This document shows positions 2,949-55,248 of a stretch of 64,000 nucleotides of DNA, in pieces. The notes under the pieces are model-generated. The model saw only the letters and a program-made list of their open reading frames with translations, was not told the DNA's origin and searched no databases. The stretch's first letter is position 1; every line of letters starts with the position of its first letter. A program made the translations under genes and the position numbers. Source of the DNA: Pecten maximus (lineage: Eukaryota); contig NC_047027.1 in NCBI RefSeq assembly GCF_902652985.1, forward strand, positions 8,990,001 through 9,054,000, written 5' to 3'.

Positions 2949-3057
2949 ATGGGCACCAAGTTTTCACGCCTTGTTGAGGTTGTAAATAAGGCACGAAACC
3001 AAAGGAACAATTCAACATCTAGAATCCCTCCATCGGAGAGCTCTGCCAGTACAGCAG
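2949..3057 (+). CDS. SPA17: Candidate (alternative) first coding exon, MGTKFSRLVEVVNKARNQRNNSTSRIPPSESSASTA, with N-myristoylation consensus MGxxxS
   Basis: Strong Kozak gtcgccATGG; open frame to donor CAG|GTAGGG in phase 1, which matches the phase-1 acceptor of the next exon. Confidence 0.7.
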
Positions 3058-4750
3058 GTAGGGTCACAGGTCACAGGGTCATTTTGTAAAGGTCATAGAA
3101 CATTGATGAAATCACAAGGTTGGAGGATAAAGGTCATGTAGAATAGACGAAAGCATGCAGGGTCATTGATCCTTGGGTTGTTTGTAATCATTGAGAGTTA
3201 CTTCCAAACAGCCATGTTAAATGTTATAGGAGCATGTGTAAAGGTCACACTATCCCCTAATGTAAAGGCCACATCTTTGATGATGCCAAAGAGATCAGTC
3301 TTCATGTAATTTGTTCCTGTAAAGATATTCATAAAGCTATAATTTAAAGTCATCACTTTTATGATCAGAACGTCATGAGGTTGAAGATATGATGGGTGTA
3401 ATTATGGGTCGTAATATCATAGGGTTGACCTATAGAATGAGGGATGGTCTTACAAGTAAAAACCTCTACAACATACAGACATCATTGTCTGGGAATATGA
3501 AGGGTGTTAGAGGTTGAACCTGGATGTCAGCTTTATGTACAGAATGGGTGATAGCCTTTCAAAATAAAACCCTGTCCCACGTACAGCACTAAGGTATTCA
3601 TTGATCCCACACTGTGGCTGAGCGTCATACAGGTTGTGTCGGATCAATGCCAGACCCCACTGTCAGGAACGTTTTACCTCGTGCTGACAGAATAAAAAGG
3701 ATGGCTGCCACTTCCTGTTAAAATATTTCAAATTGTCTTCATCACAGCATTGATCTGCTGAATCATTCAACAGTTTTCACAGGGTGTTCAGGACTTTTTC
3801 TGATGGCCTTTTGGGGGGTGGGGCCAAGATTGAGCCCCAGTTTTCCAACTGAAATATATTTAAGTCTGAAATTAATTTGCTCCTGGAAATGTCCTTTTCT
3901 CCTTTCACCAATTGGATAAGTTTAGACAAAAAAGACTCCATCGCAATTGTCTGAAGAGTAATATCCTACTATAGTTTTACATGTAAATGTGCACTGTATA
4001 TATATAAGAATGGTGTTCAGTGGCAATTTTTTCAAACATTGGTAACTGAGTAGTATATCTCATCACCCAACTATACATATATCATTTAAATTTAGAAGCT
4101 ACTTGCATGTGTTGGATAAATTTCACAGGAACAGTCAGAATTGTTTTAGGCAGACATGTGTGACGATATAAATAATGCTAGCTAGGAGTATAGATATTGG
4201 TCCTGTACTGATGCCAGGGTGTATTGATTAAAGGGCCTGGCTACTACTTCCTACTGAAGCTGGCTGTTTCCTAGACCAGCCTGCATGTCATGTATAACGG
4301 CAATCATGTGTGAAGTGTTTGATTTTTTACTGTCCAGCTTTTTATGCCTCTGTAGCCATCCCCCTCAATTAAATGTTTGTCGAAACCAATTACTCTTGTT
4401 AGAGTTCAAACATATTGGTTTTTATCTGTCAGTGACCTGATTGATTGATGTGGTGGCGTCGCAGAGCGGTCTGATCAGGGATAGGAAGGAAGTGAAAAAA
4501 CAAATGAGGGAAAAAATAAAATGAAAAAGTGCTTATAAGGCAGGTTTCTTTTTTGAGAACTTTATGTTAAAGTACTAATGGGAGATGATTTATGAATAAT
4601 AATAAGTATATGTTACACACAGAACACTCACTAGTAAGAATAACCAGAGCACTGGCTCACTAATAAATCATCGTCGTCATCGTCGTTGTCGTCGTCTTCA
4701 TTTAAATGATAAAAAAATAAGTCACTATTGTTTATTTTTCTGTTTGACAG

Positions 4751-4821
4751 AGACCGGCCATGATCCTGCTGTCCATGGCGCTCGAATGGAGGATCGGTTC
4801 TACAATAATGACGCCTTCAGG
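4751..4821 (+). CDS. SPA17: Sp17 conserved central exon (E)TGHDPAVHGARMEDRFYNNDAFR
   Basis: Acceptor tttttctgtttgacag, donor AGG|GTATGT. Translation closely resembles vertebrate Sp17 FDPAEWGSKVEDRFYNNHAF (recalled, not searched). Confidence 0.92.
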
Positions 4822-5051
4822 GTATGTATATATATATAACTTATATAAAAGCTCTCTTGGTAAGCCTTCAGGGTATTTAAAAGCTCTCTTGGTAAGCCTT
4901 CAGGGTATGTATATATATATAACTTATATAAAAGCTCTCTTGGTAAGCCTTCAGAGTATTTAAAAGCTCTCTTGGTAAGCCTTCAGGGTATGTATATATA
5001 TATATAACTTATATAAAAGCTCTCTTGGTAAGCCTTCAGGGTATGTATATA
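4813..5051. repeat. Tandem repeats containing copies of the exon-2 splice donor (GCCTTCAGGGTATGT)
   Basis: Alternating long and short units sharing AAAAGCTCTCTTGGTAAGCCTTCAG. Confidence 0.9.
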
Positions 5052-6338
5052 TAGGGTAAACCTCCGGTTAGTTTGAACAAAATTAAATAAATATTGACAA
5101 ACCTGTTCAAATTATTCGAAATTATGCTTCAGAAAATAAGTGCGAGTTCGAACTATTCGAATCAATATCGGTGAAAATCTCGGCAGAGTAAAATCATTAG
5201 GCACAAACACATCCATCGTAAATCTGATACGTAATAACGGCGGCCTGAACAATGGCACATTTACAAGTAAGTAAAATGATAGTATTTCATTTAATTCAAT
5301 GTTAATTGATCGTTAACGTTCTTCATTTCGCGATAATTATGATGGTTATTGCGCGAAGCCGCTCGGGCAATGCGTAGCTACAGTACTGTCAGTAGGCCCC
5401 AAAACAGTACCGTACACGTTTCATTTGTGACACAAAAGTTAAACATTTGTACAGTGTAATCTTTGCATGGTTATATTTTTTATCTGAATGAGAAACTATC
5501 GCTATATTATTATAATAAATGGTCTCTTAAATACATCAAAAGCAGTCTACATAACCTGTTGCGTTTACGAAAGCACTACTGTAAAAATAGGCGATATATG
5601 TTGGTAAAATTAGGTCAGAACATCAACATGTCTGCTTTTAAATATGCCCAATCGTATTATCTACCAAACATAGTTGATACCTGCAAAATTATCCATCACT
5701 AATTGGGACACCTGTGGATTGTTTTGACTGGATATGAATGCTCTTCACGTCACTCAGCACGATCGGGCAGCCGATCCTTTCAACTATACCGCAGGCGACA
5801 CCTCGCGTAGCATGCTTACCTAGTGTGAGGTCGCAGGTTTTCAGGTAATACTTTGATTGGTAGTACTTAAGAGATGTCCAGTCACAATTAAATAATCATA
5901 ATGCTAAGTTAACACTAGTTATATGTGAAAATTCACGGACGATTTCTTAGTTTGCCATACACAGCACAAATACAAATATCGCATGTTATTTATACATTAT
6001 TGGGGCCTACATTTGCAAACAACTGTCTCGTGCGTGGTGTATTTTGCAATGTAACAAAAACTAAATTAACGCTAAAATATGTGGCATATATTAAATCACA
6101 GACGCATTCTAATGATCACGCATACAATCTAATAACCTAAACGTGCTTGTTGATCAAATTTAAATCTTGGCAATTTTTCTGGGCCGGTCATCGGGGTCGT
6201 CGCGAGCTTTCAATGGAGTTTGCCAGAAAAAATGTTACTTTACGTTCTTCATTTGACAAGTTTGAACTATCCGAAATGGTGTCTGTTATAAACAGCCAGA
6301 GTTCGAACTATTACTAGCTAAAAAATTACTGTTTTTCT
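5052..6338. mobile_element. Probable non-autonomous DNA transposon, 3'-truncated at the 32-bp satellite
   Basis: CpG-richer block; recurring GTT(C/T)GAACTA motif near both ends (about 5146, 6260, 6302); TIR-like start GTAAACCTCCGGTTAGTTTGAAC. Confidence 0.4.
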
Positions 6339-13281: not shown

Positions 13282-14369
13282 AGAGGTCACCAGGTTCTAG
13301 AAACATGTTAGTGATGAGAATTGTTGATATAGAAAATCCAGCATAATGCTGAAAATTGATTGAAATATTTTTTGAAGAAATGTTGTTTGGATCATATTGT
13401 ACCACATCTTAGATAGGATGATGTCCTGAGATCTTTTGTTACATAGATAAGTACTTTTACCAGGATTGAATCTCAGGGATCACTGTATAAAGTTAAGAGA
13501 CATGGAGAAAATTTTGCTGGCATAGTTTGTTCAAAGCTGATCATAGTCTCCCGCTTCAGGGAAAAATTAAAAAGCTATCCTTGTGAGAACAATGGTAAAT
13601 ATTTGTTCATAATTTCCTCCTGAGTATTAGATGTTAAAAAGATTAATGGAGGTCATTTATTTCCCCAATGTCCAGTGCTAGGGTACTGACATGAAACTCA
13701 GGACCTCAGGTTTGCTGGTCAGCATTGAGCTTTAGACATTTTCTGTAGCTTTGTCAGTTGAGGAAGTGACTACTGTTTTACCAGGGTTTAGTTACATATG
13801 ACTATACTAGTGGGAAAATATTCCAGGGGAAGAAATTTTAAAAGAAAATTCATGAATGAAAATCTGCTGGAAATTTTCCAAGGCAGTTCCAGTGCCTATT
13901 TTGGTGTTTCTGAATAAGTTGAATGATTTCCGTAGCTGTGGTATACCACACATGTTGGTAAATGTTCAGTTTAATAGCGATCTGGAGAGAATTGTGTGAG
14001 AACAGTCTGCCAGGTTTGAGAATTGATCTGATGGTGAAGATCCAAGTTTGTTTTTTTCCTTTATTGTTTTCCTAGTGGAATATTGCCAGCTATGCAGTCA
14101 GAGATATTGATTTGAGGTGAAAGGATGTACATTTTTTCTAGTGTATTTTTGTAGTTTTTTTTTATATTGATTTGAGGTGTTAGAGTGTACATGCACATTT
14201 TTTCTAATTTAAATCATTAGTTTTTTTTATCGATCAGTTTACTATTGCTTTTTGTATTGAAACTTCACAGAAAGTTTTAAAAAATTGATTAAACTGATGC
14301 TGCATTTAGTTGGAAAGTTTGTCAGAGTTTGACTTGTTTAAAGCTCTGAAACCAATGATAAATTGTGCT

Positions 14370-14925
14370 AGAGGAACAAACCCACCATAACTACAGGGAC
14401 ACACCCACCATTACTAGAGGGACACGCCCACCTTTACAAGAGGGACACACCCACCTTTACTACAGGGACACACCCACCATTACTAGAAGGTCGCAGCCAC
14501 CTTTACTATAGGGACACACCCACCTTTACGAGAGGGACATACCCACCATTAATACAGGGACACGCCCGCCTTTACTACAGGGACACACCCACCTTTACTA
14601 TAGGGACATACCCAACATTACTACAGGGACACACCCACTTTTACTATAGGGACACACCCACCTTTACTACAGGGACATACCCACCTTTACAAGAGGGACA
14701 CACCCACCTTTTAAAGAGGGACACACCCACCATTACTAGAAGGTCGCAGCCACCTTTACTATAGGGACACACCCACCTTTACTAGAGGGACATACCCACC
14801 ATTACTATAGGGACATGCCCACCATTACTATAGGGACACGCCCACCTTTACTATAAGGACACACCCACTTTTACTATAGGGACACACCCACCTTTTAAAG
14901 AGGGACACACCCACCCTCACTATAG
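14370..14925. repeat. 23-bp minisatellite (GGGACACACCCACCTTTACTATA)
   Basis: Tandem periodicity. Confidence 0.93.
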
Positions 14926-15017
14926 ACTTCAACATTGACATCAAGTCCTAATTCATACTAGGACTAAGACATTATACAAAGGAAAGTCTTTATAGAACTT
15001 TCTGTTTGTGTTTGTAG

Positions 15018-15196
15018 TCGCCAGGTGTAGACAGTGGAGATCCTCAACAACAAGATGCTGCCCTCAAAATCCAGACAGAATACCGCAGACACTCTGCCAA
15101 AAAGGAAGTGGATGGCATGCGCGAGGAGGATGCTGCCACGACCATCCAAGCTGGGGTCAGAGGTCACCAGGACAGACAGAAAGTTGATGAAATGAA
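15018..15196 (+). CDS. SPA17: Exon with two IQ motifs: SPGVDSGDPQQQDAALKIQTEYRRHSAKKEVDGMREEDAATTIQAGVRGHQDRQKVDEM
   Basis: Acceptor tttgtag, donor AA|GTAAGT; phase 0 to phase 2. Confidence 0.9.
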
Positions 15197-15625
15197 GTAA
15201 GTACACTAATGACAGCAAAGTTAAAAGGTTATATGGGGTCAAAGGTCACCAGGAAAGACAGAAAGTTGATGAAATGAAGTAAGTACACTAATAACAACAA
15301 AGTTCAAAGGTTATTTGGGGTTAGAGGTCATAAGATTAGACAGAAGCTGGAAGAGATAAAGTAAGTTACACTAGTTACAACAGAGTTAAAAGGTCGAATG
15401 GGGTCAGAGGTCATCAGAACAGACAGAAAGTGGAAGAGATGAAGTTAGTTAAACTAGTGACAACAGAGTGAAAAGGTTGGGTCAGAGGTCACTAAAATAG
15501 ATGCAAGATGGAAGAGGTTTAATGGCACTTTAGTGACCAGCTGAGATAAAAGGTCATTTTGTACCAAAGGTCACCAGGTCAAACAGAAGCTTGATGTGAT
15601 GAAGTAAAATCCACAATTGACAACA
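15152..15625. repeat. ~82-bp degenerate tandem repeat spanning the exon-3 3' end and donor
   Basis: GGGGTCAGAGGTCA...ACAGAAAGT.GA.GA.ATGAAGTAAGT recurs 5-6 times with increasing divergence. Confidence 0.8.
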
Positions 15626-15903
15626 GACTGTTTAGTCCACCAATATACTAGCAAACACAGATCTTTATATTGTCACAGCAATAGTTTATTACCGGGAAAT
15701 CAAGGTGATGCTGGAGGTAAAGTGAGGATGCCTCTGTGCCAAATCTAATAATGAGACTGATTACATATTGGTCACGTTTTATTATAGTAAAGTAATATAG
15801 TAATGGTCCTGTATATCAGTAGATGTCTGGACCAGCTGATGTTCACATCCTGACAGCTCCCAACCATGATCATCAAGTAAGTCACATCATCTGTTTATGC
15901 TAG

Positions 15904-16633
15904 TATTTGGAGATATTAAGGTTGAGAATTTTGAAATATATAGGTTGAGAATTTGGAGATATTAGGTTGAATGTTTGGAGATATTAGGTTGAGAATTTTG
16001 AAATATATAGGTTGAGAATTTGGAGATATTAGGTTGAGTATTTGGAGATATTAAGTTGAGAATTTTGAAATATATAGGTTGAGAATTTGGAGATATTAGG
16101 TTGAATATTTGGAGATATTAGGTTGAATATTTGGAGATATTAGGTTGAGAATTTGGAGATATTAGGTTGAGAATTTGGAGATATTAGGTTGAGTATTTGG
16201 AGATATTAGGTTGAGAATTTGGAGATATTAGGTTGAGTGTTTGGAGATATTAGGTTGAATGTTTGGAGATATTAGGTTGAGAATTTGGAGATATTAGGTT
16301 GAGTGTTTGGAGATATTAGGTTGAGAATTTGGAGATATTAGGTTGAGTATTTGGAGATATATAGGTTGAGAATTTGGAGATATTAGGTTGAGTATTTGGA
16401 GATATTAGGTTGAGAATTTGGAGATATTAGGTTGAGTGTTTGGAGATATTAGGTTGAGTGTTTGGAGATATTAGGTTGAGAATTTGGAGATATTAGGTTG
16501 AGTATTTGGAGATATTAGGTTGAGTGTTTTGAGATATTAGGTTGAGAATTTGGAGATATTAGGTTGAGAATTTGGAGATATTAGGTTGAATATTTGGAGA
16601 TATTAGGTTGAGTGTTTGGAGATATTAGGTTGA
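15904..16633. repeat. 22-bp minisatellite (TTGGAGATATTAGGTTGAGAAT)
   Basis: Tandem periodicity. Confidence 0.95.
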
Positions 16634-16834
16634 CAATAGATTTAAAATGGGTATTCTGTCCTGTGTTACAGCAATAATGTACCACATATATATGTTGAAT
16701 TTTTGGAAGGTAAGGCTTGATTATCGAGATAGTTCAACTTAAGATAAATGTTCATTTTAGAGGCTACAGATTTACAAAGTTACTCATGTATCTGTGATGA
16801 AAGTTCAATAATTTTGCCATTAATGTTTTTCTGT

Positions 16835-17140
16835 TAAGGATTAAGGAAGATAGGGCCAGCAAATTTTGGTATAAGGATGATACGGCTAGTAGTTTAAGGA
16901 TTAAGGAAGATAGGACTGGTAATTATAGGATTAAGGAAGATAGGACTGTTAGTTTTAGGATTAAGGAAGATAGGACTAGTAATTATAGGATTAAGGAAGA
17001 TAGGACTGGTTATCTTAGGATTAAGGAAGCTTGGACTGGTAATTATAGGATTAAAGAAGACAGAAATGGTAGGATTAAGGAAGATAGGACTTGTAATATA
17101 AGGAAGATATATAGGGCCAGTAGTTTAGGAAGATAGGACA
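16835..17140. repeat. 30-bp minisatellite (GGATTAAGGAAGATAGGACTGGTAATTATA)
   Basis: Tandem periodicity. Confidence 0.85.
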
Positions 17141-17382
17141 GTATATAATCAGTTTTACGATTTCAGCTAAGGTATCGGTGATTGCTGAACAATACCACAT
17201 AGGGAAACTTCTTGTTTGGATCAGCTATTTAAAGGAAAGAGTGGAAGTTTATATTAATGTAGGCTCGCCTGTTCTGAGTTTGTTAGAATTGTTCATGCCA
17301 TTTTAATCTCTTTACTGTGTTGACACTTCTTGACTTATTGAAAAAATTAATGGAGAAGAAAGTTAGGTGAGAAGAAAATTTA

Positions 17383-17620
17383 GGTGGCAAGGTTGCACAG
17401 AAGTAACATTGGACATTGACCTAGACTTCCAGGGTTCAATTTCCAGAGCGTATGTGAAAAGGTTTGGAGATCATCTGCCTAACTAACTGGGTACTTTAGT
17501 TTTCTCTATGAGTAAGACCTCCCCCAATTGTTTTCTATCCAGGCAAACAGGACGTGATTCATTATGAGTTGATAAAACTTGTTTTACAATTGTTGAAAAG
17601 AAAACAAGGTTTACACTTTT
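17383..17620 (+). mobile_element. Possible old degenerate SINE of another family
   Basis: GGTGGC start, GGGTTCAATTTCC B-box-like motif, GGGTACTTTAGTTTTCTC central motif. Confidence 0.3.
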
Positions 17621-17645
17621 TATAAAGTTTATTTTGATGTTACAG

Positions 17646-17778
17646 AGAAACTGAGGAGAGACTAAAGTCTCAGGATGTCGACATTAACCTGGAAGATCCC
17701 GAGGTTGAGGCTGCCGCCGTCAAAATACAGGCAGGGTTCAAAGGGTACAAGGCAAGGAAAGAGGTCAAGGAGACCAAG
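17646..17778 (+). CDS. SPA17: Acidic-IQ exon (K)[44 protein letters not shown]
   Basis: Acceptor gttacag in phase 2 matches the previous exon; donor AAG|GTTAGT. Confidence 0.92.
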
Positions 17779-18742
17779 GTTAGTCGGGTCACATGTTATA
17801 AACAGCCTGGGAAATATATTGGCTTTACTCATCATATCCTGATTGTGATGGCTTCATCTACAGAGCAGGACTCTGTTATAAAATAGTAATGGCAGCCAAA
17901 GGTCAAATACTGACCTTGACCTCGAAATTTATCACGGACAGGTAAACACAGAAAGGTACAATTGACCAAGGGTCAATAGATGACTTCAAAGGGTAGTGCA
18001 AGGTCATGTTTTGTAAGATGATCTTTAACCTCATAAGGTAAGGTTTGTATGATGACATTGGGTTTTTAAAAAGATGTATTGGTGTGATGACCTTTGACCT
18101 TTAAAGGTAAGATTTTGCTAGATCTGAAGGTAGATGTGGACAGCTTGTGCTACTTACTTGAGTTTGCTTTGTTTGGCTTGCTTAGCTGATGTTGTTTGTG
18201 GTTTCAGCACATGAGGTACTTTTGTACACCAAAATAACTCACATTTGATGTCACATTGTGTGAGGTTATCTCCCTTTATTCTACATCAATCCTACATCAT
18301 TATTTCATGGATTTCAATGTTTTTCATTGTACAGTTTACCTCAAATATTTGAAGGAAAAAAAAATATTATTTTACTTATAACTGCATGAGCATAGTTACA
18401 TTCATACATATATGAATGTATCATGGTACAATACACTGACTGGGAATTGTATGCATGCTTGATAGAGTAAACTAATTTGTATTAAAACAGCGAAATGTAT
18501 GTAAATCATATTACAACTCATGGTGAACAAAGAAAAAGTAAATATCAATTGATTACATTGATGGAAGCTGTACTGTAAAGGGAGGTAATCGATGTCTGAT
18601 CAATTTTATATTTAACTACAGTCCTGTAATATATAGATACTATATAATTATAGATTACTGGATGGCACGAACTTTATTCATAGTTTTAGTGGTAGATTAT
18701 AAAAAATAATATAAAAAATCTTGAATTTAATTCAAAATATAG

Positions 18743-18910
18743 AGTAAGAGTGAAGTTCAAGAGTCCACAGAAGATGCAGCTCAAGGGGAGACAACTGTGA
18801 CAAAACAGGAATCAGAAGAGGTAATTGACATAGACCTTGAGGACCCTGATGTAGAGAAAGCGGCCAACCTTATTCAGAATAAATTCCGCCGTCATCCCAA
18901 AAAAAAGTGA
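18743..18910 (+). CDS. SPA17: Alternative terminal exon, PEP-19-like: SKSEVQ...EEVIDIDLEDPDVEKAANLIQNKFRRHPKKK*
   Basis: Acceptor aaaatatag, phase 0; acidic-IQ module ending in in-frame TGA at 18908-18910; AATAAA at 19654 and 20366. Confidence 0.8.
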   Translation, partial: SKSEVQESTEDAAQGETTVTKQESEEVIDIDLEDPDVEKAANLIQNKFRRHPKKK

Positions 18911-22966: not shown

Positions 22967-23077
22967 GTTATTGCTGTTGCTGCTCTTGTTGTCTTGTTTA
23001 CTGTTGCCACGAGTGTTTGTTGCCACTAGCTTGTTGCCACTGCATGAGTTTGTTGTGTTGTTTGTTGATTAATCAAG

Positions 23078-23185
23078 GCTAATGCTGATCAAGCTGATTT
23101 AGACCCAACTGCTAACGAAGCGGCCACTAAAATACAGGCTGGATTCAGAGGTCACAAGGTCAGAAAGGAGGTCAGGGCCAAAAAG
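23078..23185 (+). CDS. SPA17: IQ cassette exon ANADQADLDPTANEAATKIQAGFRGHKVRKEVRAKK
   Basis: Acceptor aatcaag (weak), donor AAG|GTAGGT; 108 nt, phase 0-0. Confidence 0.85.
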
Positions 23186-25213: not shown

Positions 25214-25345
25214 GAATCCCAAGAGACCAGCACTGAGGAGAAAAAAGAAGAAATTGATATTAATCTTGATGATCCTGAAGTAGAAAAAGCAGCGACCAAG
25301 ATTCAGGCAGGTTTCCGTGGCCACAGGACGAGAAAGGAAATGAAG
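25214..25345 (+). CDS. SPA17: Acidic-IQ cassette exon ESQETSTEEKKEEIDINLDDPEVEKAATKIQAGFRGHRTRKEMK
   Basis: Acceptor tttttcttactag, donor AAG|GTAAAT; 132 nt. Confidence 0.92.
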
Positions 25346-25945: not shown

Positions 25946-26488
25946 GGAACAACACAGACATCTGGTGGAGAAGAGGCTGGAGTATCTGATACAGGGGAGG
26001 TAACTCAAGAGAAATCAGATGAAACTAAAGTAGATGAGACTTCCCAAGAAAATACTGATGAAGTTAAAGAGGAAACATCTGATAAAAAAATAGATGAAAC
26101 TGAAGTTTCAGAGCAAAAATCTGACGAAGCTTCTGAACAAAAAACCGATGAAGTTTCTGAACAAAAAACTGATGAAGTTTCTGAACAAAAAACTGATGAA
26201 GTTTCTGAACAAAAAACTGATGAACAATTAGATGAGGTCAGAGAACAAAACTCTGATGAAAAAGTTGAGGAAACTCAGATTGAAGAAAAATCTGAAGAGA
26301 AAGTTGATGAAAACAAATTAGAACAAACTTCTCAAGAAATTGCGAAGGAAACCGTAGATCAGGCTCAATCAGAAGAAAAACTTGATGAAAATGTATCAGA
26401 TACTCCAGCTGAAAAAACAACAGATGAAAAATCAGAGGAAAAAGTTGAGGAAAGTCCTTCCACACAGACTGAAGAGCAAAATGAACAG
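25946..26488 (+). CDS. SPA17: Glu/Asp/Lys-rich disordered exon (181 aa, EQKTDEVS repeats), no IQ; read-through ends at TAG 26501-26503
   Basis: Lies within ORF 25889..26503; acceptor cacag, possible donor CAG|GTGATA; phase 0-0. Confidence 0.8.
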
Positions 26489-29538: not shown

Positions 29539-29694
29539 TCTAGCCAAGATGCTCCAAAGTCTGATGAGACAGAGAAAAGCGAGCCTGAAAAGATAGACAT
29601 TGATTTAAATGACCCTGATGTCGTAAATGCTGCCACAAAAATTCAGGCTGGGTTTAAGGGTTATAAGACTCGAAAAGACATGAAAGGACAACAG
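29539..29694 (+). CDS. SPA17: Acidic-IQ cassette exon SSQDAPK...[35 protein letters not shown]
   Basis: Acceptor ctttttacag, donor CAG|GTTGGG; 156 nt. Confidence 0.9.
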
Positions 29695-33210: not shown

Positions 33211-33363
33211 TCGTTATCTGATCAGGAGTCGGGAATGCCTGATGCGGATCAGGGCGATACAGACGACATTGATTTAAATGATCCAGATGTGGCAAAGGCA
33301 GCCACAAAAATCCAGGCTAGTTTCAAAGGTCACCAAGTGCGAAAAGAAATCCGTAAAAAACAG
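33211..33363 (+). CDS. SPA17: Acidic-IQ cassette exon SLSDQ...DDIDLNDPDVAKAATKIQASFKGHQVRKEIRKKQ (neuromodulin-like IQ)
   Basis: Acceptor ttttattccag, donor CAG|GTTCGA; 153 nt. Confidence 0.9.
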
Positions 33364-39427: not shown

Positions 39428-39607
39428 TCGGCTTCTGAGACCGACAGAGGACAAACCAACATCCCTGGTGGAGATGATAAACATGTAGGGGAGGTCGACA
39501 GTGAAATAGACATTGATTTGGCAGATCCTGAGGTGGAAAGGGCTGCCAGTAAAATTCAGGCCGGATATAAAGGTCTAAAAACTCGGAGGGAACTCAAATC
39601 AATCAAG
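39428..39607 (+). CDS. SPA17: Acidic-IQ cassette exon SASETD...EIDIDLADPEVERAASKIQAGYKGLKTRRELKSIK
   Basis: Within ORF 39419..39613; acceptor gttacag, donor AAG|GTTTGA; 180 nt. Confidence 0.9.
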
Positions 39608-42421: not shown

Positions 42422-42601
42422 GAGCCTATATCCGCCTCACCACCTACACAGAACTCGATGGAGAGTGTTCCACGCGAAGAGGAAGTTATTGATATTGACC
42501 TCAATGACCCGGAAGTAGAAAAAGCAGCGGTAAAAATCCAATCAAGTTTCAAAGGACTAAAGGCACGGAAGTCAAAGACAAGAGTACCGGCTGGTGTGGA
42601 G
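42422..42601 (+). CDS. SPA17: Pro-rich acidic-IQ cassette exon EPISASPP...IDIDLNDPEVEKAAVKIQSSFKGLKARKSKTRVPAGVE
   Basis: Acceptor ctcctgtag, donor GAG|GTTTGA; 180 nt. Confidence 0.88.
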
Positions 42602-43407
42602 GTTTGAAATCTTCTTTTCTTGTCTCTCTTGTTTCTTGTCATATTTTCTGCTTCTTTTATGATATGATAAGAGTTATTGATGTTTTATGCTTAGCTTGGG
42701 GGTGGGGGGGGGGGATGATGATTCTAGATAAAATGTCTTAGCTGTGCTGTTCTTGCTAAGAATCTATTTAACTTTGTGTTAATTATGTGGCAAGTAAATT
42801 TTCTATACCTGCTGTAAAGTTGATTGCGAATGTCAGCAGTGTATTTTAACCTACAGAGCTGTTAAATTAATCAATTACTATATTTCTGAAGAACATAAAG
42901 CATAAATTTTGCAGAGAACGTAAGGGTTTGACACAAGGGCTGTAGGAACTTAGTTTTGGATGAATTCATTGTATTTTTTATATAATTTTCAGCAAATTTC
43001 ACAAAGGGATACACTTTATATATATCATTTTATTTGATGAAATGTTACAAATTCAGAACACGATATTGTAAAAGGAAGTTAGAATATCATTAAGAAAACA
43101 ATTTTCTCTTATTTTTTAGAAGTTGTAAACTTTAGCAACTTAAAAACAATATCAAACACATTTTTTTTACTAGATTGCATGGGTATATGGTGTTTTCAAG
43201 AGAAACTCCAGACTTGAAACTGAAATAGGAAGTTTGGATATGTTTCAGAAAATTTCTTTTTTTTTTAAGAAGTTACAAATTTTAAGAAAATTGAAAAAAA
43301 AATTTGAATAAACCTGGTACTCTCTGATATAAATATCATGCATGAGTACATTTTCATTACCACAATTCACAAACTGTTTTTCTTTCTACTTTCTCTTTTC
43401 ATCATAG

Positions 43408-43578
43408 TCACCACCTGTTAATAATCTAAATATCACAAAAACGGACACTCCACCTCTCGTCAATATTCCAGTCGAGGAAGAAATTGACATTGATTTGAAT
43501 GACCCTGAAGTCGCGAAAGCAGCACTTAAGATTCAGTCAACATTCAAAGGCTTAAAGTCTCGGAAGTTTGGCTATAAG
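43408..43578 (+). CDS. SPA17: Pro-rich acidic-IQ cassette exon SPPVNN...EIDIDLNDPEVAKAALKIQSTFKGLKSRKFGYK
   Basis: Long polypyrimidine tract ending catag, donor AAG|GTTTGC; 171 nt. Confidence 0.9.
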
Positions 43579-44572
43579 GTTTGCACTTGGCTGTTGTGTT
43601 TGTGAAAATTTGTGAAAAATGTTGAAAACTTCAAGGTGAATCTTTGTACATTGTATTGATTGTGTAGTGTTAGGCAGGGATGTTCTTACACGATCATATA
43701 CCGTTCATGATTTGTCATGCTGAGTAAGGTATAGAATGAGAACCGAGTCCAAAGATATAAAGGTAAACATTACCAGGTTCTCCTTCCAGATAGAATTTCA
43801 TTTCTCATTTTAGAATATTTATATATTAGGTTTAACACCCAGTTGTGTGTGTACATGGAACACTGATAATCTCTCCCCTATCTAGTTTTTATCACAAGGC
43901 ACAAGACACTATGATTATTTAGGGTCTTGTGAACACTAATTCTGGATACATCTACATATATTGATTGATTATATTGTTTCCTTGTAATCTTGAAAATAAG
44001 CTAACTATACCGTATTGCAGCCTATATTTCTCCTAGGAATGATTCCATGGATAATTTTTCAGACTTTTTTGATTTATGGGGTTTTAGTGCAAGCAAAATG
44101 AAGATTTAAAAAAAAAATATTGAGCAATATGGAATTGCAGCCAGTGTTTAGCTCGATCTAGCTCAAGGGCAAAGATGAGGGATTGATTTATCAAAGCCAT
44201 ATTATAAGTTTGTGTAGTACAATCACTAATTACGACCTGGTAAAATTTCATGTATTTTAAAAGATTAGACTCCAACCTGCAAGGATTCCATTTTTATTTT
44301 TGTCAAAATATTCTTCCATAAAGTGTGAATCCTGTTTATTTTCTACATTGGGTGAAAGGAATAAATGGCTTCATTTATTATACCAATGTTATTTTCAATA
44401 CCATGTCTTATTTTCAAGATTCTTCCTTGCTAGTAATCATGGCTTATTTTCAGAATTTCCGGTTCTCTCTGTCATTACTCTAAATACTTTATATCCCAGG
44501 GTTTTACCCGACGTCGAGATTCTATCAGTCTTGATGTTTCACTCTTTACGCTGTCTAAACAATTATTTGCAG

Positions 44573-44752
44573 ACATCAGATTCTTCCCCTCCAATCACTA
44601 ATGTCAAACCTACATCCCCTTCACCGCCTGTAACAGCTCCCATAGAGGACGATATCGATATTGATCTAGATGATCCAGAAGTTGCGAAAGCAGCTGTCAA
44701 GATTCAATCAACATTCAAAGGTCTCAAGTCTCGGAAATTAAAGACTAAACAG
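44573..44752 (+). CDS. SPA17: Pro-rich acidic-IQ cassette exon TSDSSPP...DIDIDLDDPEVAKAAVKIQSTFKGLKSRKLKTKQ
   Basis: 3' part of ORF 44300..44758; acceptor atttgcag, donor CAG|GTTTGA; 180 nt. Confidence 0.9.
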
Positions 44753-45221
44753 GTTTGATATTTTTTGTGGAATGTATGAGGAATTTGAATCAATTAATTA
44801 GATTCTGAACACTTTGTCAACTGTAAAGAAAGGAAAGACTACAAAAATTATTTTCATATGGATTTACATATATTTTTATAGTTGATGATTATGTGTATAA
44901 GTGTGAAAAGGAAACTAGGGGGCTTATTGTTATCACAGTTCAATAAGTCAGTTACTGAATGGATCCTCAGGTTTTTGTTTATCACACAGTTTAAACAGTT
45001 TGTCGGATGGACCAGATTTGTTAGTTTATGAAATATGGACTGACCTAGTAATAATATGATTATGCATTCTTGTGACTCTTAATTGAGAAAAGTTTTATGT
45101 ATAAAATGTTCAATAGAAAATTGAAAAACCTAGGGACCAGCAAATAAACAACTCGTTGGACTTCCAAGAACCAAGTTGTTTATCTTCTATCTGTGAATAT
45201 TCTGATATATATTGTTTGTAG

Positions 45222-45410
45222 TCAACCCAGCCACCTTCCTATAACATCCAACCTTCCCCTCCGCCTCCTGCCCCTGCGGCCCCTCCGCCTCAGGCTCCCA
45301 TGGAGGATGAAGTTGACATTGATTTAAATGATCCTGAAGTTGAAAAGGCAGCCCTTAAAATACAATCTACGTTTAAAGGTTTAAAGTCGCGGAAGTTTGG
45401 AGCCAAGAAG
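45222..45410 (+). CDS. SPA17: Pro-rich acidic-IQ cassette exon STQPPSYNIQPSPPPPAPAAPPPQAP...KIQSTFKGLKSRKFGAKK
   Basis: Acceptor tgtttgtag, donor AAG|GTTTTT; 189 nt. Confidence 0.88.
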
Positions 45411-45515
45411 GTTTTTAGTTTTGTTGTTTGCTTCTTAACATTAAAGAACAAAATATTTTGAAAATCTGAATTTAATAAAACTTTAAATTTGAAAACATAT
45501 CTTAATGCAATGTGG

Positions 45516-45713
45516 TGATATCAAAACAATAGTTTATTTGACATTGATAATTATATTGTTTGAGTCCTAATTGTGTACAGTAGATATCAAAACAATAGTT
45601 TATTTGACATTGATAATTATATTGTTTGAGTCCTAATTGTGTACTGTAGATATCAAAACAATAGTTTATTTGACATTGATAATTATATTGTTTGAGTCCT
45701 AATTGTGTACAGT
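45516..45713. repeat. 66-bp tandem triplication
   Basis: GATATCAAAACAATAGTTTATTTGACATTG... occurs three times. Confidence 0.9.
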
Positions 45714-45952
45714 AGTTGATACTTGTTGAGAACAATCATTAACATTCACCGAACTAAAAAGTTATTTGCCTCTATCACTTTAAAACATTCGGCCTTAATG
45801 TATAAGTGTTGAACACAGTACCCTGTTGATAGATCTTAACTAGATTGTCAACGTGTCTAGAAAATTTAAGATTTGAGCTTGTTAATATAAAGTGTAACAA
45901 AAATAAAAACCAGCTTCTATCACATGACTTAGATATGATATCGTAATTACAG

Positions 45953-46126
45953 CCATCACCCAATAGCAACGAAATTGTATCTCCACCCGTCCCTTCATGT
46001 CCCGTAACTCCGCCCAAGCAGGAAGAAATTGACATCGATCTGAATGATCCAGAAGTTGAAAAAGCTGCTGTGAAAATTCAAGCTACCTTTAAAGGTTTAA
46101 AGTCGCGGAAATTTGGATCAAAAAAG
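45953..46126 (+). CDS. SPA17: Pro-rich acidic-IQ cassette exon PSPNSNE...KIQATFKGLKSRKFGSKK
   Basis: Acceptor taattacag, donor AAG|GTTTGA; 174 nt. Confidence 0.88.
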
Positions 46127-46441
46127 GTTTGATTCACTGTCATGGTTTTAAAGAAAATAGCTGTAATTGTGGAAGTCATTACAATCGAGTTTGATATTAG
46201 GCATATATAGACTGAATTGTGGCTCTCTTTCTAAGGAAATGATATATTATGCAGAAAACAGAACTGAATTAAAAATGTATGCAGAAATAAAAGTAAAAAT
46301 TAATTGTTTAATTAGTGAGTTTGGTGGCAACACCTGGGAATATACTTTCTTTAATGACAGAATTATACACATTTTTATGTCACTGGCTGGAAATCCTGGC
46401 CTTTAGGTATGTGAACACACTGATATATTTTCTTACTTCAG

Positions 46442-46612
46442 TCTTCAGCGCCACTAACAAATAATATTCCAACACCCCCTCCATCGACTGTCAATATCCC
46501 ATCAGAAGAGGAAATTGACATCGATTTAAATGACCCAGAAGTAGAAAAGGCGGCTGTAAAGATCCAAGCTACCTTTAAAGGGCTAAAGTCCCGGAAGTTT
46601 GGGAAATCAAAG
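46442..46612 (+). CDS. SPA17: Pro-rich acidic-IQ cassette exon SSAPLTNN...KIQATFKGLKSRKFGKSK
   Basis: Acceptor ttttcttacttcag, donor AAG|GTTGGA; 171 nt. Confidence 0.9.
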
Positions 46613-47184
46613 GTTGGATATTTGGGTGTTGTCTGTATGCTTCCTTGTTCCAAGAATTGTTTGATTCAGAGGACAACAAATATTTCTTACAAGATACGAC
46701 CACTACAAGTTACTTTACTGGGTGAATGGTAGAACTAATACTTTCGTGAAGTAAGATTGAAATTTAGATTTTAGTCGGGCCTCTTTAACTGTAAATCATT
46801 ACCTCAAAAACAAAGAAAAGGAGAGAACCATATTTGTTATATAGGTCTAATATAATATATTATGGCATCGTTTGCCCATTTTCTCTCTCTTACCAATAAT
46901 TACAATCAGTATAGAGACATACTAACATTATTATGGTGTATATTTTATGCTTCATTACCTAATAGAAATTGGCTAATTGAAATATATAGCCAAGGAGAAA
47001 ATGTCATGTACTAGTAGAAATCTGATGACAATTGGAGGTCTTTGGGACACTTGATGGCGTTTCAGTATTGGGAACAGACTCGTTTGTATCACTTAAGAAT
47101 ATGACCGATGTAAATCCTTTGTAATGAGATTACTTGCGTGTACTGAAGCAGGTTCAAATGTCATTATATTGTTCACACTTCCAG

Positions 47185-47334
47185 ACATCTGTAGAACAGC
47201 CACTGAATCACAGGGACACTAAACCACCGGAAGTCGTAGATATTGACTTGACAGATCCAGAAGTTGAGAAGGCAGCCGTTAAGATTCAGGCTAGCTTTAA
47301 AGGCCTCCGGGCACGAAAAACAAATGTTCAAAAG
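47185..47334 (+). CDS. SPA17: Acidic-IQ cassette exon TSVEQ...VVDIDLTDPEVEKAAVKIQASFKGLRARKTNVQK
   Basis: Within ORF 47134..47340; acceptor cacttccag, donor AAG|GTTTGA; 150 nt. Confidence 0.9.
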
Positions 47335-52204: not shown

Positions 52205-52264
52205 TTAGTCCCCTGCCGTTTGAAAAACGGGGGGACTATAGGTTTACCCTCCGTCCGTCTGTCC

Positions 52265-52302
<38 letters not shown>

Positions 52303-53775: not shown

Positions 53776-54412
53776 GAATCGGCCCCTGCTCCAACAGAGG
53801 GAACAGAAGAAAAGAAAGAGGAGCCCGTAGGCGATGTTGATATTGATCTGAATGATCCAGAGACGGCACAAGCTGCCCTGAAAATCCAGGCTGGATTCCG
53901 GGGTTACAAAACTAGAAAAGAAGTAAAGGAAAGCCTTGAAACAGAGGAAGGTAAGACTTCAGAAGAGGCACCTCAGACAGAAGGAGAGAAGCCTTCAGAA
54001 CAAACAGAGGAAGCTAAACAGGAGGAAACAAAACCAGAGGAAGTGAAACAAGAGGAAAGCACCACAGAGACACAACAGGAAACAGTGGACATCGACCTTA
54101 ATGATCCCGAGGTGGCCAAAGCAGCGACTAAAATCCAAGCTGGGTTTAAAGGGTACAAGGTCAGAAAAGACATGAAGAAGGAAGGAGAAGAAACAACGAC
54201 GGAGGAGGCTCCACAAGAACAGGAAACAGCGCCCAAGGAAGACGCACCAACAGAACAAGCACCTGCGCCAACAGAAGATGCGCCTGCACCTACAGAACAA
54301 GCACCAGCGCCTACAGAACAAGCACCAGCGCCTACAGAACAAACACCTGCGCCTACAGAAGAAGCACCTGCGCCTACAGAACAAGCACCAACAGAAGAGG
54401 CACCTAAAGAAG
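53776..54412 (+). CDS. SPA17: Large exon with two acidic-IQ modules and APAPTEQ heptad repeats (GAP-43-like composition)
   Basis: Within ORF 53743..54432; acceptor ctgtacag, donor AAG|GTGAGA in phase 1. Confidence 0.92.
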
Positions 54413-54914
54413 GTGAGAATCTGTCAGTGTAGGATGTTATCTCAGTGTTACTGCCTGGTTTGTCAGGTTTTATTTCTGTAATCAGCATAAACGTTATATA
54501 GCACAATTCTTCAAGTGTAATTAACGGTTAGCATAAATATATTTTTATGTTGTTGAGATATTACACAAAATGATGGAGTGTACACTCATCATAAACTGCT
54601 TTGCTTTTGCTTTGCAAAATTAAATTAAGAGTTATGAAGTAAGATAAACACATGAAATATTGATAATTACACCAACACATTGGGTCTTCAGTCTTGTTTT
54701 TGTGTTATTGATAGTTTTAAGTGTAGTTGTGAGGGGTAAAGTAACACACACCTGGAAGTTGAAGCAACCTCACTTAAAATGATATCATTCATCTATGATA
54801 CACACATACATGTATTTTTCATACTCTACATATATAAAAATTGTTAAGGTGTTAGTCAGCAGTAGCAGAACTATTTACATCAGTAAATTTACAATACAGT
54901 ATATATTACAATAT

Positions 54915-55148
54915 GGGGCCGCGGTGGCCGAGCAGTTATAAGGTGTCCTGACACTTTATCACTAGACCTCCACCTCTGGGTTGTGAGTTTGAAACCCACG
55001 TGGGGCAGTTGCCTGGTACTGACAGTAGTCCGATGTTTTTTTCACTGGGTATACTCCGGCTTTCCACCATCTCAAAAACCTGGCATGTCCTTAAAAGACA
55101 TTGGCTGTTAATAGGATGTTAAACAAAATAAACCAAACCAAACCAATA
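54915..55148 (+). mobile_element. tRNA-derived SINE with target-site duplication
   Basis: A box GGTGGCCGAG, B-box-like GAGTTTGAAAC, central TACTCCGGCTTTCC, (AAACC)n tail. Flanking 26-bp direct repeat ttacaatacagtatata(t/c)tacaatat at 54889-54914 and 55149-55174. Confidence 0.85.
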
Positions 55149-55243
55149 TTACAATACAGTATATACTACAATATATTATCATACAATATATTACAAATCG
55201 TTTGAATTTCTCCTTTATTTTCTTTGTTCTCTCTTGCTTGCAG

Positions 55244-55248
55244 ATTAG
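55244..55248 (+). CDS. SPA17: Coding part of terminal exon (completes Asp, then TAG)
   Basis: Very strong polypyrimidine acceptor ttctttgttctctcttgcttgcag; G+AT TAG fits the phase-1 donor. Confidence 0.75.

Follow-up and report, generated by a model that had tools for sequence, protein, structure and literature searches.

Exon structure of the scallop Sp17 gene

The window (the whole stretch of DNA that was analysed, 64,000 nt) contains most of the Pecten maximus SPA17 (Sp17) gene, in a long form of ancestral type. This gene is real and transcribed; its coding exons span ~109 kb, splice phases match throughout the exon chain, and all exons given below in window coordinates are on the forward (+) strand. 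The exon for the RIIa docking/dimerisation domain (C13:8948000-8948153) is located outside the window, 42 kb upstream, and the window itself contains no RIIa domain. Long introns separate the RIIa exon from exon 2 (~46.6 kb) and exon 2 from exon 3 (10.2 kb). The initial annotation had taken the exon at 2949 for the Sp17 exon, but Pfam has no match there; the true Sp17 signature, ETGHDPAVHGARMEDRFYNNDAFR (..DPAVHGARMEDRFYNNDAFR; EDRFYNN), is exon 2 (4751-4821, phase 1 in, 0 out), which encodes the C-terminal stretch of the docking/dimerisation domain in its extended Sp17 form and is collinear with residues 52-75 of gecko Sp17. Over ~140 residues, gecko Sp17 is collinear with scallop residues 1-136 (50% identity, E 3e-42), and it matches this RIIa locus alone among the five in the genome that score above the Pfam cut-off.

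Exon 3 (15018-15196, phase 0 in, 2 out) encodes two IQ motifs, 25 residues apart and without an acidic lead, the second of which aligns collinearly with the only IQ that reptile Sp17 has; exon 4 (17646-17778, phase 2 in, 0 out) encodes the first acidic-plus-IQ module; and exon 5 (18743-18820), found in RefSeq isoforms and RNA contigs, is an acidic linker without IQ. Further downstream are a cassette exon whose IQ has a degenerate acidic lead (23078-23185), phase 0-0 module exons at 25214-25345, 29539-29694, and 39428-39607, a cassette exon of acidic low-complexity sequence (25946-26488; 181 aa, no IQ, no Pfam family), and one intact phase 0-0 module exon (33211-33363) that is absent from all P. 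maximus RefSeq isoforms. Orthologues of the latter are present in Mizuhopecten X1 (79% to residues 499-545) and in the Argopecten model. Seven Pro-rich module exons of the KIQ[SA][ST]FKGL type, all phase 0-0, then form a cluster at 42422-47334 (42422-42601, 43408-43578, 44573-44752, 45222-45410, 45953-46126, 46442-46612, and 47185-47334), followed by exon 53776-54412, which encodes two modules plus an (A/T)PAPTEQ repeat and has a phase-1 donor (54412) that every one of the eight RefSeq isoforms uses.

The exon at 2949-3057 (MGTKFSRL...) is an alternative first coding exon, with which RefSeq isoform X2 (XP_033758759) starts instead of the RIIa exon. It matches the N-myristoylation pattern G-{EDRKHPFYW}-x(2)-[STAGCN]-{P}, and it has a phase-1 donor (CAG|GTAGGG) that suits the phase-1 acceptor of exon 2. 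Mizuhopecten isoform X2 agrees with it at all 36 residues (100%); a Lymnaea relative has a similar MG.KFS start, and parallel isoforms starting with MG are found in Lymnaea, an annelid-like transcript, amphioxus, and mantis shrimp.

At the other end, the gene had been closed at 55248; donor 54412 is instead joined, in eight of eight RefSeq isoforms, to six further exons that reach from 62407 to 66912 in window-extended coordinates. Two of them are within the window (62407-62508 and 63210-63286) and four beyond it (64487-64795, 64967-65071, 65531-65752, and 66769-66912, the last ending in CTIL and a stop). Exon 65531-65752 matches Pfam Pex19 (PF04614; 28.3 bits, cut-off 22.2) and also the C-terminal domain of PEX19 in structure 2wl8 (E 9e-4); both proteins end in a CaaX box. 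The scallop tail differs from PEX19 in being a divergent paralogue fused behind an IQ array, with the PEX3-binding N-terminal region unrecognised. This Pex19-like tail, a part of the scallop gene that was initially overlooked, is kept in four scallops and in Mytilus.

IQ motifs and the acidic-plus-IQ module

A six-frame scan reproduced the 18 IQ motifs that had been proposed in 16 exons, all of them on the forward strand and within 16 open exon-sized segments; the IQ cores start at 15069, 15144, 17725, 18872, 23132, 25301, 29641, 33310, 39554, 42536, 43531, 44702, 45360, 46076, 46562, 47284, 53884, and 54133. Every exon tested exceeds the cut-off of Pfam IQ (PF00612), and the full RefSeq protein reaches E 4e-76 with this model. 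The idea that the motifs are all in frame is sound for 16-17 of them and fails for the one at 18872, which lies past the used donor 18820 in a read-through segment (18821-18907) that encodes a divergent module, VIDIDLEDPDVEKAANLIQNKFRRHPKKK, and runs into a stop at 18908. Donor 18820 is used by the RNA contigs and by all RefSeq isoforms that have exon 5, and no contig from four RNA runs covers 18822-19034. A 286-aa clam RNA contig has a module with a 13-residue stretch, DIDLEDPDVEKAA, of this segment and ends with an IQ and a basic tail; the segment is a candidate alternative last exon (~234 aa product) or a relic.

The repeated acidic context of the IQ motifs was likewise borne out, 16 of 18 fitting one gapless 30-residue module with the consensus ExIDIDLNDPEVEKAAxKIQAxFKGLKxRK (D4, D9, P10, A15, A16, I19, and Q20 invariant), which matches the complete IQ pattern IQxxx[RK]Gxxx[RK]. 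Searched against the 918-Mb P. maximus genome, the module profile is found at full length 16 times, always within the window, which excludes chance. Most modules are spaced by 44-83 residues through Pro-rich or acidic linkers, an arrangement more in keeping with beads on a string than with a rigid lever. The module of exon 33211-33363 has a Ser at the position of the neurogranin/GAP-43 PKC site; across the 16 modules this position is Ser in three, Thr in five, and Gly in seven.

Isoforms and transcript evidence

RefSeq lists eight isoforms (1272-1515 aa, 14-16 IQ motifs), named "titin-like" and similar; public databases already annotate the many-module Sp17, though the names mislead. All eight map exactly onto the exons of the gene, and RIIa, EDRFYNN, and 14-16 IQ motifs are joined in them. 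X5 lacks the whole docking/dimerisation region and starts inside the array; exon 18743-18820 is skipped in X4 and X8, exon 23078-23185 is missing from X3, X4, and X8, exon 25946-26488 is missing from X7 and X8, and X6 skips three of the seven cluster exons. Through exon skipping and alternative starts the gene has eight or more isoforms, which carry 14-16 IQ motifs; use of exon 33211 would raise the number to 17.

RNA evidence came from Logan contigs. The Sp17 exon had been proposed to join the downstream IQ exons, and it does: in contigs from two studies 4821 is spliced to 15018, the last 30 bases of exon 2 being fused to exon 3, which is followed by exon 4. Altogether, two to three studies provide the joints 4821>15018, 15196>17646 (GT..AG, in two RNA runs), 17778>18743 (also two runs), 17778>25214 (exon 4 joined directly to the 25214 exon, in contigs of two runs), and 18820>23078 (via a loose contig end). 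For junctions 3057>4751 and 54412>62407, as for the long-range continuity between exon 1 and the tail, the source is RefSeq and other gene models. Separate genes for exons 2, 3, and 4 are refuted by the RNA contigs.

Could predictors have merged neighbouring genes? A short Sp17 gene (RIIa plus EDRFYNN) followed by a distinct IQ-repeat gene would agree with the two very long introns, with the ATG-bearing alternative first exon at 2949, and with an isoform (X5) that starts within the array, but the exon 2-3-4 fusions seen in two independent studies make this extremely improbable, as do a 916-nt clam RNA contig in which a single reading frame covers RIIa, EDRFYNN, and five IQ motifs, 6-8 kb metatranscriptome contigs encoding RIIa and many IQ motifs, and the same join in models of more than 20 species from several pipelines. 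A misfusion at the 3′ end, with the Pex19-like tail as a separate neighbour and the true end at the stop at 54430, has more to recommend it: the intron 54413-62406 is 8 kb long, read-through of donor 54412 adds ENLSV before that stop five codons on, polyadenylation-like signals lie downstream, Pfam Pex19 is matched on one scallop tail exon only, and the junction comes from gene models. We nevertheless regard it as unlikely, since the tail is present in all eight P. maximus isoforms, in Mizuhopecten, Ylistrum, and Argopecten models (including the Mizuhopecten authors' own, OWF40450.1), and in Mytilus models, which another pipeline produced; CTIL is likewise the end of Lineus isoforms that have RIIa and IQ; the phase-1 donor and acceptor are compatible; in the models the tail lacks a separate start codon; and the higher-scoring Pex19 matches, which we take for the canonical gene, occur elsewhere on the chromosome, 4.4 Mb away.

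Relation to Sp17, calpacitins, and axonemal IQ proteins

Sp17 has been described as a docking-domain protein of cilia and flagella, conserved across metazoan phyla (PMC8339350). The scallop protein shares with vertebrate SPA17 an orthologous N-terminus (the RIIa domain and the extended EDRFYNN segment, then IQ), whereas reptile Sp17 extends no further than the counterpart of exons 1-3 and has a single IQ that lacks the acidic lead. Compared to the latter, the scallop protein is ~10 times longer, with 13-15 additional acidic-plus-IQ modules, an alternative, predicted-myristoylated start, and a Pex19-like CaaX tail.

Against PDB, the module profile matched PCP4 over all 30 positions (E 1.6e-7), followed by neuromodulin, neurogranin, and Sp17 IQ, and by the axonemal RSP23, CFAP91, DRC9, and DRC10; the Sp17 chains lie beside DRC10 in 8j07 and 9fqr, which are thus axoneme structures. 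The assignment to the PEP-19/neurogranin type stands, with PCP4 (residues 28-57) aligning with the entire module, acidic part and IQ, and the IQ peptides of neurogranin, neuromodulin, and Sp17 with its IQ half. Calpacitins are small single-IQ proteins (62-240 aa), unlike the scallop protein, in which the module is repeated 14-16 times over a length of 1300-1500 aa that also includes docking and prenylation domains. The suggestion that the locus makes both Sp17 and calpacitin-like products is right as to docking-free forms (X2 and X5) and wrong as to size, these being 1382-1500 aa. Isoform X2 (MGTKFS...) resembles GAP-43 and, by description, igloo in having an N-terminal acylation signal before AATKIQAxFRGH-type IQ motifs, a layout also seen in a mantis-shrimp relative (MGC..., 160 aa, three modules), but it is 1500 aa long and has every downstream exon in common with the docking-domain isoform. 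RSP23, CFAP91 (FAP91), DRC9/DRC10, and SPATA17 have the same IQ subtype (AA.KIQAxF[KR]G...RK), and a ciliary context is likely common to them and scallop Sp17; they differ in matching profile positions 11-30 only, without the DIDLxDPE lead, and their other domains are unrelated.

The hinted link between the Sp17 and calpacitin families gains weight from a cichlid Sp17 (nrgnb) with RIIa, EDRFYNN, and three to four neurogranin-type modules. Zebrafish nrgnb has gone under the name spa17 (PMC9415131), and in the mouse Nrgn and Spa17 belong to a single locus (PMC4098794). At the level of sequence, a link of Sp17 to PCP4 and neurogranin is supported.

Evolution of the module array

Sp17 orthologues have five IQ motifs in Trichoplax, Nematostella, and amphioxus, and 8-10 in other molluscs, and the module is conserved in animals as far apart as Trichoplax, Nematostella, amphioxus, and copepods. 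Since Sp17 is multi-module from Trichoplax to amphioxus, the array is ancestral, and the gene, which had been described as expanded, is so only in the seven-exon Pro-rich cluster. This cluster, the sole scallop addition, is present in four of four scallop genera and absent in mussel, oyster, clam, and abalone.

The modules are under purifying selection. Per module pair, 13.0 of 30 codons differ synonymously and 4.9 non-synonymously; modules 46022 and 46508 differ by 13 synonymous and no non-synonymous codons; and up to four codons are used at invariant residues, and six at the near-invariant Leu7. Neutral, recent tandem duplication or gene conversion, giving mostly non-functional exons, would account for a lineage-specific cluster whose copies vary from ~7 to 10 among scallop genera, but we give it almost no credence: the cluster module cores share only 69-84% DNA identity, with introns that do not align, yet, by the codon differences just given, their residues are nearly the same, and copy order appears (by inspection) to correspond across the four genera. 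The gene structure, the exon 2-3-4-5/7 splicing, the orthology, the module conservation, and the purifying selection are what the analysis has shown.

A putative calmodulin store

A function of scallop Sp17 as a calmodulin reservoir is inferred, and so are calmodulin binding and stoichiometry, the part played by the acidic stretch, and localisation. The exon order runs from the RIIa exon or the myristoylation-signal exon (2949) through the EDRFYNN exon and the exon with two plain IQ motifs to 13-15 cassette exons, nearly all phase 0-0 and encoding one acidic-plus-IQ module each (two in the last), with the Pex19-like tail and its CaaX box, CTIL, as the presumed protein C-terminus. Each module may be an independent helix binding one calmodulin, the complete IQ pattern would favour the Ca2+-free form, and the acidic DIDLxDPE stretch, as in PEP-19/PCP4, whose acidic part tunes Ca2+ exchange, would speed up that exchange on bound calmodulin. 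At one calmodulin per module, a single chain would hold and tune up to 16-17 calmodulins. In the literature we found no calmodulin-binding, stoichiometry, or kinetic measurement for the scallop protein or its invertebrate relatives. IQ motifs can also bind other EF-hand proteins, and the array might be an axonemal or cytoskeletal scaffold or spacer with fixed light chains, as in RSP23, CFAP91, and myosin necks, and no calmodulin store. Such a scaffold would suit the axonemal best PDB matches of the IQ half (RSP23, CFAP91, DRC9, DRC10, and SPATA17), the myosin-neck-like spacing of the first two IQ motifs, and the testis enrichment of bivalve Sp17 transcripts (PMC7720611); we consider it rather unlikely, given the linkers and wide spacing of most modules, unlike a lever, the strictly conserved acidic lead with its full-length alignment to PCP4 only, and the isoforms without docking domain.

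For the calmodulin store, the chosen N-terminus would set the location. The RIIa form may dock AKAP-like axonemal helices, as Sp17 does in solved cilia structures, an axonemal location that is carried over by analogy from vertebrate Sp17; the predicted myristoyl start would direct the protein to membranes, and the predicted prenylated tail may provide a second membrane or cargo contact. Taken jointly, a long SPA17 orthologue of ancestral type, the proposed calmodulin-module mechanism, and a location set by the N-terminus probably describe this gene correctly. Multi-module Sp17 is an old animal-wide state and no scallop oddity, the short single-IQ Sp17 of reptiles is a reduced form, and Sp17 is, judging from sequence comparison, a likely source of vertebrate neurogranin.

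A transcribed Sp17 orthologue with cassette module exons

The locus is one transcribed Sp17 orthologue with alternative starts and cassette module exons, and it is already modelled in RefSeq. We utilized HMMER to search the last module exon against 1.84 billion representative sequences, which gave 1338 matches (86 of them with E < 1e-30, and up to 24 matched stretches); a follow-up search retrieved the P. maximus RefSeq proteins XP_033758758 to XP_033758765, eight isoforms of 1272-1515 aa with 14-16 IQ motifs, which carry the public names titin-like, futsch-like, kinX-like, and CABYR-binding-like. Full-length analyses were made on public protein records, window exons were searched singly, and the isoforms were placed on the window and its flanks by exact peptide matching. 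Isoform X1 (16 IQ motifs) consists of the following forward-strand exons: a RIIa exon upstream of the window, 4751-4821 (exon 2), 15018-15196 (exon 3, with two IQ motifs), 17646-17778 (exon 4), 18743-18820 (exon 5), 23078-23185, 25214-25345, 25946-26488, 29539-29694, 39428-39607, seven exons of a Pro-rich cluster (42422-47334), 53776-54412, and six more at 62407-66912 (extended coordinates, running past the window end at 64000). Isoform X2 begins at 2949; isoform X5 begins at the Met that ends exon 3, and so lacks the whole docking/dimerization (D/D) region; exons omitted in other isoforms are those at 18743, 23078, and 25946, or three exons of the cluster. Nearly all module exons are phase 0-0 (exon 3 runs from phase 0 to 2, and exon 4 from 2 to 0).

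We also examined Logan RNA contigs from four runs, belonging to four studies, over 14900-20800. The joint 15196>17646 (GT..AG) was found in runs X1 and X5 (run labels, distinct from the isoform names), and the joint 17778>18743 in runs X1 and X8; for example, a 617-base contig of run X1 carries 304 upstream bases followed by exon 3 and exon 4. The loose end before 15017 (runs X1 and X5) places uniquely at 4791-4820, where the Sp17 signature exon ends, and the loose ends behind 17779 and 18821 place at 25215-25240 and 23079-23108, respectively. The contigs therefore link exons 2, 3, and 4 and continue onward with exon skipping like that of RefSeq, which bears out the proposal of the initial annotation that the Sp17 exon is joined to the IQ exons; given these joints and loose ends, the alternative, that the Sp17 exon never joins them, does not hold. 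In addition, a complete protein of 286 aa (P0119), with RIIa, EDRFYNN, and five IQ motifs, is known from a clam close to Ruditapes through a 916-base RNA contig; the protein terminates in an IQ and a basic tail.

A 3′ UTR after 54430 was considered from word-sharing, as about 0.7 of the words of 53776-55248 occur in runs X1-X4. We rejected this as UTR evidence because 54915-55130 resembles a repeat, so the words may stem from other transcripts. On visual inspection this stretch, which lies just 3′ of the stop that read-through from the last module exon would reach, resembles the head of a tRNA-derived SINE (GGCCGAGC...GAGTTTGAAACCC); ARAGORN found no tRNA at 54915-55130, and an Rfam scan (gathering thresholds) and a tRNA scan gave no match in the whole window.

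The acidic-plus-IQ module

A six-frame scan of the window found 18 IQ cores on the forward strand in the context first described for this locus, contained in 16 open segments; the remaining IQ-core matches are isolated and interrupted by stops. Pfam IQ scored above its cut-off for every exon tested, and reached E 4e-76 with the full RefSeq protein. Sixteen of the 18 motifs align without gaps as a 30-residue module, ExIDIDLNDPEVEKAAxKIQAxFKGLKxRK, with 7 invariant positions. When the assembly (918.3 Mb, 3983 contigs; the window itself, C13:8990001-9054000, without any N) was searched with the module profile, the complete module was found 16 times; the sole further matches, on C18, cover the IQ half only. 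Since all 16 full-length genome matches lie inside the window, the module repeat is a genuine and specific feature that no other locus in the genome shares. Pfam matches to Seipin and Yop-YscD on the full proteins were discarded as repeat artefacts, having no significant stretch and scores summed over repeats.

The count of 18 IQ motifs over 16 exons thus stands for motifs and open segments, but a single reading frame holds 16 of them, and 17 at most; two motifs need separate treatment. The IQ at 18872 sits 3′ of the donor GAG|GTAATT at 18820, in a frame that meets a stop at 18908, and is only possible as an alternative last exon or a relic. A module's Val-Ile codons (GTA ATT) form this donor, and splicing there deletes the module; read-through would leave 18821-18907 open, encoding a divergent yet recognizable module and a basic tail before the stop, and this segment has a 13-residue stretch (DIDLEDPDVEKAA) in common with a module of clam P0119. 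A short, Sp17-sized product ending at 18907 was a candidate, but no contig of the four RNA runs covers 18822-19034; these runs therefore lend the read-through form no support, although absence from contigs is not proof against it. The second motif lies in exon 33211-33363. This exon is intact and its splice sites are good, but every P. maximus RefSeq isoform lacks it; its orthologue is used in the Mizuhopecten X1 and Argopecten models.

At the DNA level, module cores share 50-74% identity outside the cluster and 69-84% within it, and their introns are unalignable. In a pair of cluster modules, 13.0 of 30 codons differ synonymously and 4.9 non-synonymously; the modules at 46022 and 46508 have 13 codon differences, all synonymous. 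Up to four different codons encode the invariant residues, and six encode the near-invariant Leu7. Every module copy is old and maintained by purifying selection.

Local repeats are present as well. The 66-bp tandem triplication at 45517-45715 (98-100% identical), in the intron between 45222-45410 and 45953-46126, is much younger than the exon duplications. At 15152-15478, the end of exon 3 (..GVRGHQDRQKVDEMK) and its GTAAGT donor are part of an 82-bp tandem repeat (4 copies, 83% matches), so that the intron holds three additional donor-bearing half-IQ copies without an acceptor of their own. The introns around exon 3 also hold minisatellites at 14368-14922 (23-bp x24), 15905-16637 (22-bp x33), and 16837-17104 (30-bp x9).

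The Sp17 N-terminus and its alternative starts

The RIIa-type docking/dimerization exon (MAVPFSNTKLRVPKGF...; PF02197, 51.2 bits against a cut-off of 22.4) is located at C13:8948000-8948153, 42 kb upstream of the window, and no IQ motif lies between it and the window; seven of the eight RefSeq isoforms carry the domain. The initial annotation had implied a D/D exon within 2949-4821, which does not exist: neither a regular-expression scan nor the whole-genome PF02197 search found RIIa inside the window. The Sp17 signature itself is the 71-base exon 4751-4821, encoding ETGHDPAVHGARMEDRFYNNDAFR; it carries the extended D/D segment (DP..G...EDRFYNN) and aligns with residues 52-75 of gecko Sp17. 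This segment directly follows the RIIa helices, within residues 1-75 (PMC8339350).

The open reading frame at 2949 (MGTKFSRL...) has no Pfam match and is not Sp17-like. Since the RIIa exon and the 2949 exon each finish in phase 1, the phase in which exon 2 starts, either can begin the protein. The MGTKFS exon matches the myristoylation pattern, and its 36 residues are identical in Mizuhopecten X2. Similar starts were observed elsewhere. In Lymnaea, MGAKFSKF... leads into the EDRxYNN segment, and in a transcript assembly deposited as that of a polychaete parasite, MGAILTTVCPC... leads into EDRFYNN. The two amphioxus isoforms X1 and X2 show the same kind of difference (RIIa vs an MGSCSS start), and a 160-aa protein of a mantis shrimp starts with MGC... 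and contains three modules.

A Pex19-like C-terminus

The models go on past 54412 for 319 residues, ending in CTIL (a CaaX box). This tail occupies 62407-63286 of the window and then runs outside it to extended 66912 (L015:487-2912, numbered from the window end). Its exon at L015:1531-1752 matches Pfam Pex19 (PF04614, 28.3 bits against a cut-off of 22.2) and the PEX19 structure 2wl8 (E 9e-4); the other tail exons have no Pfam match, so no N-terminal PEX3-binding region was recognized. The Mytilus orthologue scores 62 bits with Pfam Pex19. The tail shares 62-70% identity among scallops (four genera) and 27.5% with Mytilus (E 2e-28), and the Lineus isoforms also end in CTIL; the fusion of tail and array probably predates the bivalve/nemertean split. 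This is not the peroxisomal PEX19 of the genome: stronger Pex19 matches lie at C13:13407865-13408563, which argues that the tail is a divergent paralogue fused to the array. As modelled, then, the gene includes a tail predicted to be prenylated, and the UniRef name Peroxin-19 of the Mizuhopecten and Mytilus proteins is due to this tail.

Orthology and distribution

Residues 1-140 of gecko Sp17 (160 aa) are collinear with residues 1-136 of isoform X1 (50% identity, E 3e-42), and although five RIIa loci in the genome pass the Pfam cut-off, only this one has a strong gecko Sp17 match. The single gecko IQ (binding predicted from the motif) aligns with the second IQ of exon 3, so that reptile Sp17 corresponds to exons 1-3. 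Proteins that combine a MAVPFSNTKLRVP... start with several modules occur in bivalves, gastropods, and a chiton; in the annelid Owenia, the nemertean Lineus, and flatworms; in sea urchin, sea cucumbers, and amphioxus; and in Nematostella, a jellyfish, a coral, and Trichoplax. In copepods and the midge Culicoides, long multi-IQ relatives combine a Pfam RIIa match with a different N-terminal sequence (20-26 IQ motifs in the RIIa-bearing copepod proteins, about 15 in the midge).

Counted as IQ motifs or module-HMM matches, there are 5 in Trichoplax, Nematostella, and amphioxus, 7-9 in oyster, clam, and abalone, 10 in Mytilus and chiton, 11-13 in Lineus, 14-21 in scallops, 25-26 in copepods, 4 in a cichlid, 1 in salmon, and 1 in reptile Sp17, where the acidic part is absent. 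These counts indicate that the array is ancestral and the single-IQ Sp17 of reptiles a reduced form. All four scallop genera have the Pro-rich KIQ[SA][ST]FKGL cluster, which is missing in the other molluscs seen. Four copepod proteins (P0002, P0013, P0164, and P0200; Pfam RIIa, 20-26 modules) also have precomputed glutathione S-transferase matches (PF02798, PF13409, and PF13417), which would be a C-terminal fusion unlike the Pex19-like tail of bivalves.

Relation to calpacitins

The resemblance of the module to the acidic-plus-IQ unit of PEP-19/PCP4, noted at the outset, is confirmed: the 16-module profile matches residues 28-57 of PCP4 end to end, over all 30 positions (E 1.6e-7), and the IQ peptides of neuromodulin (E 4.5e-5) and neurogranin (E 1e-4). 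A search of PDB with the module profile returned, in order, RSP23, PCP4, CFAP91, the neuromodulin IQ, the neurogranin IQ, Sp17 (9fqr and 8j07), SPATA17, and DRC9/DRC10; with one module exon alone, PCP4 was the first match. The likeness to PCP4 and neurogranin consists of an AA.KIQ..FRG-type IQ directly after an acidic segment. Another hallmark of calpacitins is a phosphorylatable Ser within the IQ (IQASF), which releases calmodulin; at this PKC-type position the 16 aligned modules have Ser in three, Thr in five, Gly in seven, and Lys in one. Calpacitins are, however, small, single-IQ, and otherwise domain-free, whereas all eight scallop isoforms have 14-16 IQ motifs plus other domains in 1272-1515 aa, and the four RNA runs (14900-20800) showed no small product; the suggestion that the locus also encodes calpacitin-like products was not borne out, as to size, in these isoforms and runs.

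Cichlid proteins once named Sp17 and now neurogranin b have RIIa, EDRFYNN, and 3-4 modules of neurogranin type. According to a zebrafish study, the name spa17 has also been applied to nrgnb, which resembles rat neurogranin more closely than rat Sp17 (PMC9415131); mouse Nrgn and Spa17 have been described as one locus (PMC4098794), and human and cattle lists place NRGN and SPA17 within one interval. A paper on the docking-domain superfamily treats SPA17 with IQ motifs and calmodulin unmentioned. In the searchable literature, multi-IQ Sp17 is undescribed and, except for the zebrafish naming remark, a link between Sp17 and calpacitins is absent; neither this architecture nor what it implies for the origin of calpacitins appears to have been described there.

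It is quite possible, though we would put it at somewhat below an even chance, that the scallop locus represents the unsplit ancestral gene that gave rise to vertebrate calpacitins. The reading fits because teleost spa17/nrgnb is one gene with both parts, and mammalian Nrgn lies at the Spa17 locus; human NRGN presumably lies downstream of SPA17 on the same strand. Under this reading, neurogranin would be the 3′ acidic-plus-IQ exons of the ancestral Sp17 gene after these acquired their own promoter. PCP4 and GAP-43 may perhaps share this origin, via later duplication, and what remained after the split would be a short single-IQ Sp17, as in the reptiles here; this short form is expected in tetrapods generally. 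Similarly, the docking and N-acylated starts (in scallops, pond snail, the annelid-like transcript, and amphioxus) would be the forerunner of the split between Sp17 and GAP-43/igloo.

Predicted function and significance

Calpacitins prefer Ca2+-free calmodulin and tune its Ca2+ kinetics. By analogy, each module (which has the IQ pattern IQxxx[KR]Gxxx[RK]) would bind one calmodulin, chiefly in its Ca2+-free form, the acidic lead would tune Ca2+ exchange as that of PEP-19 does, and the start chosen would place the array on axonemes or membranes; binding per module, the role of the acidic lead, and placement by the start are all inferred. The main rival reading gives the array a fixed structural role with light chains. 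The IQ lever of a myosin neck has contiguous IQ motifs, one every 23-25 residues, in one long helix; here only the first two motifs, 25 residues apart, fit such a spacing, the others being 44-83 residues apart with one gap of 230.

As the gene is real and already in RefSeq, the value lies in its reading and not in discovery of the locus. Sp17 is usually studied as a short antigen of sperm, cilia, and tumours with one IQ, and calpacitins are regarded as small proteins, chiefly of vertebrate neurons. The reading corrects dozens of public models (at present called titin-like, triadin-like, futsch-like, DNA ligase-like, or Peroxin-19). Together with its relatives, the locus also shows that the acidic-plus-IQ module of PEP-19 and neurogranin is old, going back to Placozoa and Cnidaria, and exists as arrays in Sp17 orthologues, behind interchangeable anchoring ends. 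This gives a testable origin for neurogranin, and a natural multivalent scaffold, predicted to bind calmodulin, in which to study local calmodulin supply at cilia and membranes.
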